A DNA stretch of 63,899 nt, filler included, from Olpidium bornovanus S191 (GCA_017911155.1; 26 parts of 26 records of this genome joined end to end with filler, not necessarily neighbours in it); one strand, 5' to 3'; positions 658 to 3,044 are shown, numbered from the whole stretch's first letter. Numbers and translations are program-made. Notes: generated by a model not told the origin, from the sequence alone.

Positions 658-1542
658 CAAACGCCCCGAGCGCGCCCGTTGCGGCACCCCGCCCGACCTC
701 TCCTTTAACCCGAATTCTTCTGCTATCTCCCCTCGCTACACGCCCTCCGCGTCCACCCACATCCCGCCCCTTCTCCCGTTGGCTCCCTCAATTGTCGACG
801 CCCCTCGAATGTCGACGCGGGATGCGCATTTTCGCACCGGTCCCGTCGCGAGACGAGGACCGTTCGTTCTCTCCCTCACACACACTTTTTTTTTTTCATT
901 GCACCCCTTTCCCCCAAGCGTTTCTCGTTTTGTCCCTATGTAAGTAAATGTCTTTTCAGCCAGATTCCGGCTAATACCTCCGATTGCTCCCCAATTTTCG
1001 GCCCCGCGTTCCGGAATGTCTCCGGTCTGCAGATGATTACCCCCTCGTTTGCGCTCGATTCTTGGTGCGGTAGTTCCCGGCCCCCTCCCCCCCTTTTTCC
1101 CCTCCTTTGGCAGATTGAGCAAATCAAAAACGTGGCGTCCGCGATCTGTGCGGCCGGAGCTGAAAAAAGAAAAGCGCGGAGCGGTCGTCGCTTTGCGTTC
1201 GCGCGAAAGGAGGAGAGGGGGAGGGGGCAGCAGAGTTGTGGTTGCGCGGCGGTGTTCATTTGCCTGCGGGGTGAAACCCGAATTTGGTGTTTCGTGGTTG
1301 GGGAACGCGTCAGCTTCGCGGTCACGTGATTCGACAACCGGGGCCGCCCTCCGCCCGTACCCCCTTTCCCCCCCGACTCTCCCTCGACCCCCTCCCAACC
1401 GAAAACCCGCCACGGTTGTCCACGCGGGAAAACGATTAACAACTGTACACAACTGGAGGCGACGTAGTCCAGGCAGATGAAGCGAGGCGTCCGCGAGACG
1501 GGAGAGAGCACCAAGGAGCGGGCGGGGGCGACGGCCGAGGCG

Positions 1543-2143
1543 ATGCCGGGGATAGCTAGCGGCCGCCACCAAAAGGGGGGCAGCGTGGCGCCCCAGGTCG
1601 ATTTCTCGGCGCCGCGCACCCACGAGCATGTCAGCGAGAAGCCCTCGCCGCTCGAGGACTTCCACTGGGAGTACACCGAGGAGCCGCACGCGACTCGCCG
1701 GAAGCAGATCCTCGCCAGGCACCCCGAAGTCAAGGCGCTCTTTGGGCCGTGCCCCGCGACGAAGTATGTCACCGCCGCCCTCGTGGCCCTGCAGCTCGCG
1801 CTCGCCGTCCACCTGCGGGACCAGCCGGTTTTCTCCTGGAAGTACCTCGCCGTCCTCTACTTCGTCGGCGGCACCGCGAACCACGCCCTTATGCTCGCCA
1901 ACCACGAGATATCCCACAACCTCGCGTTCAAGTCCATCGCGCTTAACCGCCTCCTCGCCATGTTCGCGAACTTGCCAATCGGCCTCCCGTACTCGGTGGC
2001 GTTCAAAGGCTACCACGCCGAGCATCACAAGTTCCAGGGCGTCGACGACGTGGACACCGACATCCCCACGGAGGTCGAGGCGAAGTACATCAGGGGCCGC
2101 GTGGGCAAATTTCTCTTCTGTGTTTTCCAGATATTCTTCTACG
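1543..2143 (+). CDS. DES1: Sphingolipid delta-4 (dihydroceramide) desaturase, first exon; the rest is missing
   Basis: N-terminal Lipid_DES motif DFHWEYTEEPHATRRKQIL, His boxes HEISH and HAEHH, and DTDIPT. Donor GTGAGT at 2144. An alternative in-frame ATG lies at 1477. Confidence 0.95.
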
Positions 2144-2495
2144 GTGAGTGTGGGCTCGGCCCGAAACATGTGTGTGACTTGGCACTCAAAAGTGGGCCTG
2201 GGGGGGGGGGGGGGGGGGGGGGTTTCGGGGCGGGGGGGGGGGCCGGGGGGGGGGGGGGGGGGGCCGGTTTTTTTTTTTTTTTTTTTTTTTTCGCCCGCCG
2301 CGGCTTTTCGTCTTCTCGCAGGAAGGGGGGGGGGGGTTGTTGGAAAGGGGGAGGCATAGTAAAGGGGGGGCACTGCGCACTCTCCGCCCCTGCACCGTAG
2401 TTCTCCCCCTCGTACATATAGAATAAACAAAGGCGGCGGAAAATACAGCCTCGGTAGAGCTCCTCCGTACCCCGAAGAACCGTCTACGTTCTTCA

Positions 2496-2507
2496 GGTTA
2501 TGAGCCC
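2496..2507 (+). promoter_or_regulatory. Copia-type primer-binding site (complementary to the 5' half of tRNAiMet), copy 1
   Basis: ...CTTCA|GGTTATGAGCCC. This is the reverse complement of GGGCTCATAACC, the anticodon arm of fungal initiator tRNA-Met, as in Drosophila copia/Ty5-type half-tRNA priming. Confidence 0.75.
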
Positions 2508-2586
2508 AATCGTGACTTTGTCCCTCCGATTGTGGTTGCGCGGGTGGCCGAGCCCCGTTGACAGCAGTGCCTGAGGTGCCTGGCTC

Positions 2587-2595
2587 GAGAGGGGG
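2587..2595 (+). promoter_or_regulatory. Polypurine tract (GAGAGGGGG) directly before the LTR
   Basis: GAGAGGGGG|TGTTGG. The 13-mer TCGAGAGGGGGTG also marks the PPT/LTR junction of the copia at 38079-38091 (minus strand). Confidence 0.75.
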
Positions 2596-2727
2596 TGTTG
2601 GAATGGTTTCGCAGGGCGAGCCAGACACCTGGCAAATAGGGCAGATAGCTCAGTTGGTAAAGCGTCCCTCCGGGATAGGGAAGGTCCCGAGTTTGACCCT
2701 CGGTCGGCCCATTTTTGATGCGCAACA
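2596..2727 (+). mobile_element. 132-bp copia-type LTR containing a tRNA-derived sequence
   Basis: Terminal inverted repeats TGTTG (2596-2600) and CAACA (2723-2727), with a PPT directly upstream and a PBS directly downstream. Confidence 0.8.
2639..2711 (+). pseudogene. tRNA-like cloverleaf (73 nt, GGG at the anticodon position), probably a tRNA-derived Pol III promoter or pseudogene
   Basis: Acceptor stem GGGCAGA/TCGGCCC (1 mismatch), discriminator A, D arm GCTC-AGTTGGTA-AAGC, anticodon arm TCCCT-CCGGGAT-AGGGA, variable loop AGGTC, T arm CCGAG-TTTGACC-CTCGG, then TTTTT at 2712-2716. Non-canonical positions are A5, A22, C33 and T56. Confidence 0.85.
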
Positions 2728-2739
2728 GGTTATGAGCCC
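2728..2739 (+). promoter_or_regulatory. Copia-type primer-binding site (complementary to the 5' half of tRNAiMet), copy 2
   Basis: CAACA|GGTTATGAGCCC directly after the LTR. The 16-mer CAGGTTATGAGCCCAA is identical at 2494-2509 and 2726-2741. Confidence 0.8.
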
Positions 2740-2773
2740 AACCCGCGACCAACTCCCTGTCAAAGACGCAACC

Positions 2774-3044
2774 ATGGAAGACGGTCGCATGCTCCCGCGA
2801 CACAGTAGCCGGCTGCGGCTGCGCGACGAAACGCTCAGCATGCCGGGAGCGTTGACCACGAGCCAAGACGAAAACGGCAGCGTGGCGTCAACGGCCTCCC
2901 GCATCTCGCGCATGTACGTGGCGGACTCCCTTCGGGCACTCCAGGAGCGCCACCAGAAGGAAGACGAGAAAAGGCATAGGGAACGGGAGCTGGAAGACCT
3001 ACGTCTGCGCCTGGCAAGAGCCGAGGAACACTCCAGGGTACTGG
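2774..3044 (+). CDS. Open ORF just after the PBS; possible gag N-terminus, truncated by the contig end
   Basis: ATG 35 nt after the PBS; about 90 codons open to the contig edge, with a charged helical stretch (LRALQERHQKEDEKRHRERELEDLRLRLARAEE). The gag call rests on position only. Confidence 0.35.

Follow-up and report, generated by a model that had tools for sequence, protein, structure and literature searches.

An LTR that contains a complete tRNA-like Pol III cassette and stands between an upstream PPT and a downstream PBS raises two questions: what kind of element owns such an LTR, and how did it come to stand in this order? The window in which it was found is a stretch of 63,899 nucleotides made of parts of 26 records of Olpidium bornovanus S191 joined end to end with filler, and the part analysed here is the entire 3,044-bp contig C3604, so that position 3044 is its right-hand limit. 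Copies were sought in the O. bornovanus assembly (28.2 Mb in 13,525 contigs, mostly 1-5 kb). The working assembly of this species was described as metagenome-binned from a non-axenic sample, with about 13,700 contigs and 29 Mb (Chang et al. 2021).

The contig also carries part of a host gene. The protein encoded by 1477-2143 is 100% identical to an Olpidium bornovanus protein named at NCBI as a sphingolipid Delta4-desaturase-domain protein, which agrees with the early-diverging fungus that the earlier note had supposed as the source. Directly past this exon, the 5′ end of an intron reads GTGAGT at 2144, and in two contig runs (X10 and X14) the exon end at 2143 is spliced to a further exon, ...FFYALRPMFV. 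Because they carry this spliced junction, X10 and X14 represent RNA, though X10 is labelled 'DNA?', and the same splice places all of the analysed sequence downstream of 2143 within the intron. A search of the assembly for the second desaturase exon did not find it. The first LTR of the contig, a copia LTR termed LTR-A, lies behind a tract of G and T runs, and further copies of LTR-A are likewise inserted in G- or C-rich tracts. The G run preceding LTR-A was considered as a PPT and rejected: genuine 3′ copies of LTR-A are preceded by ...CCCAGTGAGGCGGGG, and the solo copies lie in G/C-rich targets. The features of the contig are collected in Table 1.

Table 1. Positions of the host exon, the two LTRs and the associated features in contig C3604.
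Feature	Position	Strand	Basis or detail
Sphingolipid delta4-desaturase (host gene), first coding exon	1477..2143	+	ORF; Pfam PF08557 + PF00487
Low-complexity G-run/T-run tract in intron, retroelement target region	2197..2337	.	sequence and repeats D1/D2
LTR-A, 158 bp, assigned as 5′ LTR of an autonomous Ty1/copia element	2338..2495	+	TGTTGGAAAGG...TTCTTCA; TATA-like CATATAGAATAAA; at least 39 copies
First PBS, GGTTATGAGCCCA	2496..2508	+	complement of host initiator tRNA-Met positions 28-40
Non-coding internal region of Helenus-type TRIM	2509..2586	+	30 genome matches to probe 2494-2600
Hairpin with arms 2574-2587 and 2617-2630, enclosing PPT and LTR start	2574..2630	+	inverted repeat I23, 14 nt, 93% complementary
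PPT, GAGAGGGGG	2587..2595	+	sequence; GAGGGGGGG in most copies
LTR-B, 132-bp LTR of Helenus-type TRIM	2596..2727	+	at least 55 copies; starts TGTTGGAATGG, ends GATGCGCAACA
tRNA-like cloverleaf, 73 nt	2639..2711	+	ARAGORN, tRNA-Pro (GGG); Rfam RF00005
T5 run, candidate Pol III terminator	2712..2716	+	CTTTT (T4) in 34 of 41 near-full copies
Second PBS, GGTTATGAGCCCA, identical to the first	2728..2740	+	exact repeat D11
Leader and start of gag frame (ATG 2774) of the copia element owning LTR-A	2742..3044	+	runs off contig end

The LTR that contains the cassette, LTR-B, is the terminal repeat of a miniature element with many copies. No fewer than 55 matches to it lie in the organism's own assembly, with 56 distinct copies among the fetched loci, and a probe for the internal portion (2494-2600, a stretch that takes in the PBS, the PPT and the start of LTR-B as well) gives 30, about half of the LTR count. 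LTR-B lies downstream of the internal portion in every match whose downstream end is visible, and the PPT, GAG(A/G)GGGGG, adjoins it in the copies with a visible junction. The full element is about 365 bp long and consists of LTR-B (132 bp), PBS, 78-86 bp, PPT and a second LTR-B; this LTR-PBS-internal-PPT-LTR layout is seen at loci L011, L015, L019, L020 and L029, and pairs of 132-bp LTRs set 98-102 bp apart occur at these five and at L012 and L074. Perfect 5-bp TSDs flank four of the full elements (CGACC at L011, CTGAC at L015, GTCAG at L019 and CAAGG at L020), and that of L029 matches at four of five bases (AATCC/AATCT). Solo copies of LTR-B are found at L014 and L028, while at L002 three LTRs and two internal portions stand in tandem, in an array cut by the contig end. 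The internal portion, about 100 bp with PBS and PPT included, is too short for an ORF, and most of 22 junction copies are predicted to form the hairpin stem around PPT and LTR start. Two other descriptions of the repeat were considered and rejected: a plain tandem satellite with 232-bp spacing, since the units show LTR, PBS and PPT anatomy and TSDs, and a SINE with 16-bp TSDs, since the 16-bp repeat is the PBS itself.

We put at about 0.85 the probability that 2596-2727 is the LTR of a Helenus-type TRIM that has recombined with a copia element. The figure covers structural identity; the anatomy, the copy number, the TSDs, the match of PBS to tRNA, the copia partner and the recurrence of the chimeras are observed. 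The earlier note had placed the PPT at 2587-2595, a 132-bp LTR with TGTTG...CAACA ends at 2596-2727 and a PBS after it, and all three lie where it put them. It had also named a single-copy unit as grounds for abandoning its reading, which the 55 or more matches of LTR-B speak against, and had proposed a search for paired LTRs with 5-bp TSDs, which yielded the CGACC, CTGAC, GTCAG and CAAGG elements. Pairs of LTR-B within an element are 80-92% identical, against a family background of 86% for random pairs; as the pairs are no closer than this background, the insertions are old, and present-day activity of the family is doubtful.

Both copies of the PBS lie within a 16-bp exact repeat (CAGGTTATGAGCCCAA, D11) at 2494-2509 and 2726-2741. 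The genome has five tRNA-Met(CAT) genes of its own with an initiator-type T loop (GATCGAAAC) and the anticodon arm GATGGGCTCATAACCCAAATG; they were found with a pattern linking the anticodon loop to the initiator T loop, earlier patterns having hit nothing but additional copia PBS sites or sequence that is not tRNA. All 13 nt of the PBS are complementary to the anticodon stem-loop (positions 28-40) of this initiator tRNA. The tRNA would thus have to be cleaved within the 3′ strand of its anticodon stem to serve as primer, the way Ty5 and Drosophila copia are primed and in keeping with the half-tRNA-primed copia type that had been proposed for the element. The PBS with ...AAGC or a similar extension occurs at no fewer than 48 further places in the genome. 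The earlier note had overlooked the second copy of the PBS and the separate LTR at 2338-2495.

This separate LTR, LTR-A, is found in other contigs in the company of coding sequence. In C4235 it stands behind an open 580-aa RVT_2/RNase H frame and the PPT AGTGAGGCGGGG, and in C1900, C3201, C4301 and C526 it is followed directly by PBS, leader and gag, the leader and gag of the first three being 90-96% identical to 2742-3044 of the window. The gag frame continues in C1900 to a Retrotrans_gag match of 21.7 bits, below the Pfam cut-off of 24.1. Solo copies of LTR-A are flanked by 5-bp TSDs. Because an RVT_2 frame precedes it, PBS and gag follow it and its solo copies carry TSDs, LTR-A is identified by its sequence context as the LTR of an autonomous Ty1/copia element. 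The elements with LTR-A, which contain an RVT_2 pol, share with the TRIM the 16-bp PBS block, the TGTTGGAA start and 5-bp TSDs. The Helenus-type TRIM codes for nothing and would depend for copying and integration on the Ty1/copia elements of its genome, to which it can be tied because they share its PBS, TGTTG...CA termini and 5-bp TSDs.

The cloverleaf occupies 73 of the 132 bases of LTR-B and scores 50.7 bits (E 3e-9) against Rfam RF00005, for which the gathering score is 29. The A box, TAGCTCAGTTGG at 2646-2657, is canonical, the B-box region at 2690-2700 reads GAGTTTGACCC, and ARAGORN calls a tRNA in nearly every copy of LTR-B (43 copies). When the 41 near-full copies are compared, the window copy has a base other than the commonest at six positions (2607, 2633, 2634, 2660, 2694 and 2712); the change at 2660 (G22A) breaks the D stem, that at 2694 (C56T) turns the B box from GTTCGA into GTTTGA, and that at 2712 makes the fifth T. 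In the commonest state of the family, the B box is GAGTTCGACCC / GTTCGA, the D stem is intact and the A box is canonical, which settles in the affirmative whether the family, as opposed to the window copy with its C56T and G22A, keeps B box and D stem. The cassette is genuine and the window copy is slightly decayed. Its earlier description as a 73-nt cloverleaf with A- and B-box-like motifs filling more than half of the LTR stands; the TTTTT that was part of that description is not typical of the family, being present only in the window copy and one other of the 41.

The cloverleaf cannot work as a tRNA, because it has C33 where U33 is expected, its anticodon is GGG and its best identity to the organism's own tRNAs is 72%. 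The last value comes from a search for a recent parent among 39 own tRNA genes sampled (63 of about 620 first-look candidates were scored), in which no such parent was found and a tRNA-Ile was the best match. Acceptor and D-stem mismatches are present in the window copy, and measured against what a functional tRNA should have (U33, an anticodon used by eukaryotes, intact stems and closeness to own tRNAs of the same isotype) the cloverleaf falls short.

LTR-B may be divided into a U3-like part (2596-2638), an R made of the tRNA-like part and the T run (2639-2716) and a U5 (2717-2727), and we lean somewhat towards transcription from it by Pol III. The polymerase would start at the tRNA-like part of the 5′ LTR, read through the weak T4 run there and stop at the T run of the 3′ LTR, giving an RNA of about 310 nt in which the tRNA-like part would serve as R and GATGCGCAACA as U5. 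The window copy is probably a poor Pol III template because of C56T in the B box and the mismatch in the D stem. RNA-type contigs of X10 hold the joint of LTR-B end, PBS and internal region as well as Helenus pieces fused to other sequence, and Helenus-type sequences are thus in RNA; the contigs do not indicate the polymerase.

The tRNA-like part could also be a passive relic of a SINE or tRNA gene captured in an ancestral LTR, with no promoter role in elements transcribed by Pol II or by host read-through. We regard this as unlikely, although several observations suit it. The boxes are no better conserved than the rest of the LTR: conservation among copies is 0.92 in the tRNA-like part vs 0.93 in the U3-like part, and hence nothing in the copies points to selection on the boxes. 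CpG-type decay is seen in the B box across copies; together with the flat conservation it is what neutral decay of old copies would give. Pol III would be halted ahead of the PBS by the T run that immediately follows the cloverleaf, the RNA-type contigs that join Helenus internal regions to unrelated flanks (loose ends at 2494 and 2728) resemble read-through, and a cloverleaf with C33, GGG and a 72% best match among 39 cannot serve as a tRNA. Against a relic stands the promoter content of the LTRs, the 43-bp U3-like part of LTR-B being without a TATA-like motif whereas LTR-A has one, and the commonest state of the family keeps both a canonical A box and a GTTCGA B box. The T run is a weaker obstacle than it seems, as the usual run is only T4, which is a weak terminator by the T-run strengths of yeast Pol III. 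The predicted RNA of about 310 nt fits Pol III, and Cassandra, a TRIM with 5S rRNA in its LTRs, is reported to be transcribed by Pol III.

The second question concerns the order of the parts, which in the window runs host intron, LTR-A, PBS, Helenus internal region, PPT, LTR-B, PBS, copia leader and gag. The four contigs in which PBS, leader and gag directly follow LTR-A hold one PBS; the window has an extra 232 bp exactly between two copies of the 16-bp PBS block, and this extra block consists of the Helenus internal portion, PPT, LTR-B and second PBS. From the PPT-LTR-PBS order the earlier note had deduced a tandem or recombinant array, and the window indeed holds a recombinant, between a TRIM and an autonomous copia element. 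It is one of several. At L010 the same architecture is built with another copia LTR and a clearly different leader, the Helenus parts being 90-96% identical to those of the window, and this difference in copia LTR and leader makes L010 an independent event. A non-Helenus LTR precedes the Helenus internal region in 7 of about 27 units (the window, L010, L006, L017, L021, L138 and L075), and each of these seven heterologous joins is located precisely at the PBS. The opposite combination, LTR-B followed by PBS and a non-Helenus internal region, occurs at five places with five different sequences: a copia-type leader follows at L016, L071, L010 and in the window, and at L084 there are matches to Retrotran_gag_2, zf-CCHC and Pol_BBD above the Pfam cut-offs and one to gag_pre-integrs of 21.2 bits, below its cut-off of 28.4. 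The hybrid at L006 consists of a 78-bp 5′ LTR, PBS, internal region, PPT and LTR-B; its 5′ LTR belongs to a family of at least 13 copies that start exactly at the TGTTG of L006. As its two LTRs are unlike each other and its ATTCC TSD is perfect, L006 was integrated as one cDNA.

A template switch during reverse transcription, the simplest origin and one to which we give an even chance, would account for the order in the window as follows. Helenus RNA would be packaged together with copia RNA and reverse-transcribed from a 3′-truncated initiator tRNA. Copia minus-strand DNA that has reached its own PBS could anneal to the PBS of the co-packaged Helenus RNA, copy U5 and R of Helenus and jump to the 3′ R; from there U3, PPT and internal region would be copied back to the PBS, and completion of synthesis in the usual way would give the order seen in the window. 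The same switch between two Helenus RNAs would give tandem arrays. Intermolecular transfer of plus-strand strong-stop DNA between two minus strands with the same PBS would produce X-PBS-internal-PPT-LTR-B, where X is the foreign LTR, together with the reciprocal LTR-B-PBS-copia; both kinds are seen in the genome. Taken more broadly, and with confidence a little short of even, the chimeras with at least five copia lineages at the shared PBS may be products of strand transfer within virus-like particles. They would then be direct genomic evidence that a Pol III-type TRIM RNA is packaged and reverse-transcribed together with copia RNA, and the PBS would be a recombination hotspot at which autonomous and miniature elements swap LTRs and with them promoter types. 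Such swapping, if it takes place, offers a route by which LTRs bearing a tRNA could be acquired and spread.

The composite and the other PBS-centred hybrids might instead have arisen after integration, by recombination (ectopic or unequal) or gene conversion where neighbouring or dispersed elements have PBS or LTR sequence in common. Complex elements with a common LTR are classically explained in this way (reviewed in PMC1950507); the elements are old enough to have had time for rearrangement, tandem arrays that could act as donors exist (L002), and the outer TSD of the composite lies beyond the contig end at 3044. The joints themselves, however, make such an origin improbable, somewhat more so than a relic cassette. 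Both sides have only the 16-bp PBS block in common, a very short length for homologous recombination; the seven heterologous joins coincide with the PBS, where strands are transferred; and the hybrid L006, with unlike LTRs and a perfect 5-bp TSD, implies integration of a single hybrid cDNA.

Far less probable is an artefact of assembly, in which the junctions 2495/2496 and 2727/2728 would be chimeric and the genome would hold copia and TRIM copies only separately. The assembly does consist of 13,525 short contigs, built from short reads and metagenome-binned from a non-axenic sample, both junctions are within repeats, and neither LTR-A nor the gag part is covered by the RNA-type contigs. Short-read assemblers, however, normally use words of 21 bases or more, and because the shared block of 16 bp is shorter than such words a mis-join in the graph is unlikely; moreover, the architecture recurs in L010 with a different copia family, and the L006 hybrid has a TSD. 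Least probable of all, by a small step, is that LTR-B is native to one autonomous copia family, of which the 365-bp element would be an internally deleted derivative and whose 5′ end the window would show: LTR-B is followed by PBS and copia coding sequence at L084 and by copia-type leaders at L016, L071, L010 and in the window, but the five internal regions adjoining it all differ, no copy of it was seen behind a copia 3′ end, the PPT-bearing element sequence before it, where there is one, is the Helenus internal region, and the leader and gag of the window go with LTR-A in four other contigs.

Drosophila copia and yeast Ty5 have, as in Olpidium, a PBS that matches the anticodon stem-loop of initiator tRNA-Met and not its 3′ end. 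Both also have LTR termini of the TGTTG...CA type and 5-bp TSDs. Unlike the Olpidium TRIM, they are autonomous and have Pol II LTRs. Structures with three LTRs, in which two internal regions share the middle LTR and which were attributed to a switch between co-packaged RNAs and carry one TSD, resemble the composite in the window; they were described in the Triticeae as fusions of closely related autonomous elements (Angela-type, Squiq and Opie) that switch at R (Sabot and Schulman 2007, PMC1950507). The Olpidium composite differs in that it joins a 365-bp TRIM to a copia element with an unrelated LTR, in that the joins are at the PBS, and in that its outer TSD would lie beyond the contig end. 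Cassandra (Kalendar et al. 2008, 2020) is like the Olpidium TRIM in having a Pol III gene inside each LTR, in being non-coding and in forming tandem arrays of LTR-internal-LTR, for which template switching has been proposed as the origin. Its LTRs carry 5S rRNA and not a tRNA-like sequence, it is found in plants, and Pol III transcription has experimental support for Cassandra where we infer it for the Olpidium family.

The closest relatives in kind are the Helenus elements, defined as TRIMs with tRNA-derived sequence in their LTRs and grouped with Cassandra and Ajax as TRIMp3 (Kojima 2024, PMC10886601), and the mention of Helenus/TRIMp3 in the earlier note was correct, the kind having been published in 2024 (PMC10886601). 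According to the same study (PMC10886601), fungal Helenus elements make 5-bp TSDs and solo LTRs, are mis-called as tRNA genes, mostly have a PBS that matches the anticodon loop of initiator tRNA-Met, show a link to Copia in the similarity of the PBS and were reported only from Pucciniales and a few Agaricomycetes; multiple origins are argued for Helenus, so that sequence kinship is not needed for the name. The Olpidium family has two short LTRs and a short non-coding internal region, box A and box B in the LTR (defined for Helenus as TRGCY..YGG and GGTTC, respectively), PBS and PPT, and 5-bp TSDs. A look-up of short strings in the data file of that study (PMC10886601) found that GGTTATGAGCCC opens 48 internal portions and that the LTR start TGTTGGAATGG occurs 0 times, and because this start is absent from the file the family is new, as far as a comparison of short strings goes. 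The literature search found no paper linking Olpidium to tRNA-bearing TRIMs.

The Olpidium family is therefore Helenus/TRIMp3, an already published kind; what is new is a family in Olpidiomycota, a phylum outside Dikarya, along with the chimeras with copia elements that recur at the PBS, one of them in the window. Helenus in Olpidium, a zoosporic lineage beside the terrestrial fungi, suggests that the partnership of copia with tRNA-bearing LTRs is older or more widespread in fungi than so far described, or that it arises repeatedly. Roughly 40-60 'tRNA-Pro(GGG)' calls in the O. bornovanus genome are LTRs, so tRNA counts made on the assembly have to be corrected. The repeated joins at the PBS make it possible to test which autonomous elements mobilise such TRIMs, a question that for Cassandra had been left unanswered and for Helenus had been approached only by indirect means.

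Compared in detail, the published Helenus elements LTR-1_PGr, LTR-1_PTrit and Helenus-2_PGr (PMC10886601) resemble the Olpidium family in PBS, PPT, 5-bp TSDs, solo LTRs and tandem arrays. The PBS of Helenus (PMC10886601) and that of Olpidium have the same first 12 bases, GGTTATGAGCCC, and both complement the anticodon loop of initiator tRNA-Met; in both the presumed partner is Copia, and the LTRs are called tRNA genes by tRNA finders. At 365 bp, the Olpidium element is near the lower end of the published Helenus range of 311-1263 bp. The hosts differ, Olpidiomycota on one side and Pucciniales with a few Agaricomycetes on the other, and so does the evidence for the partner: the Kojima paper has only similarity of the PBS and one similarity of an internal region, whereas in Olpidium the TRIM is joined at its PBS to several copia lineages.

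The 11-nt tail of LTR-B (GATGCGCAACA), the stretch of this 132-bp Helenus-type LTR that separates its T run from the PBS, acts as a block of its own. In locus L021 of the same assembly it is tandemly duplicated at the LTR-B 3′ end, while in L075 the tail alone is added onto the end of another LTR (...CCAACA), before the PBS. This behaviour would fit the tail being U5. At L073, a complete LTR-B is followed directly by a diverged partial LTR whose first base is that of the tRNA-like part and whose end reads ...TTTCAACA; this partial copy is an R-U5-like fragment without U3.

Locations of features in the window and in loci fetched from the same assembly.
Feature	Sequence	Positions	Strand
Desaturase splice site	window	2143/2144	
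Homopolymer-rich tract at LTR-A	window	2197-2337	
Hairpin, first arm	window	2574-2587	
Hairpin, second arm	window	2617-2630	
78-bp LTR-like repeat	L006	576-653	reverse
LTR-B with partial LTR	L073	1-220	reverse

The PPT lies, together with the first 21 bases of LTR-B, within a strong hairpin. Most of 22 junction copies are predicted to form this stem, the 75-nt stretch folding at about -25 to -36 kcal/mol, and it may have a role in PPT use or RNA structure.

LTR-A, the 5′ LTR of the autonomous copia element, is inserted at homopolymer-rich G/C or purine/pyrimidine tracts, both in the window and around its copies in L033, L034, L036, L037, L039, L040, L042 and L063, with AAGGG, CTTCC and GGCCC among its TSDs. 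These sites suggest a target preference of the copia LTR-A for such tracts. The association may also be a sequencing or assembly artefact, since long poly-G and poly-T stretches often occur at contig ends and near elements. Splicing of the host desaturase transcript spans the retroelement-bearing intron. The exon that follows was not found in the working assembly, and the annotated 249-aa protein is therefore truncated.

A first look across the genome gave about 620 tRNA candidates. In the loci fetched, ARAGORN made 43 calls of ‘tRNA-Pro’ (GGG, AGG or TGG), every one of them within LTR-B, copies of which probably inflate the tRNA gene counts of the O. bornovanus assembly; the genome may also hold further tRNA-like repeat families. 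Initiator-type tRNA-Met is represented by five genes (L141, L142 and L144, and also on contigs C2019 and C8508), with an anticodon arm of AUGGG/CCCAA that carries an A27-A43 mismatch, and a T8 run at the gene end.

The 78-bp LTR-like repeat of L006 (TGTTGCGCC...) occurs in at least 13 copies, and its first 8 bases are an exact inverted repeat of the LTR-B end (GCGCAACA). This repeat may belong to a second miniature element, as its LTR. In L012, on contig C544, one and the same sequence (CAGCACGACAGGAAAC...ACATTACC) occupies the 40 bases on either side of a full Helenus element, so that this element sits within a direct duplication of larger extent and not between simple TSDs. The PBS with its extension ...GGTTATGAGCCCAAGC is common genome-wide, in at least 48 places, and the half-tRNA initiator primer is shared by many copia lineages of O. 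bornovanus.
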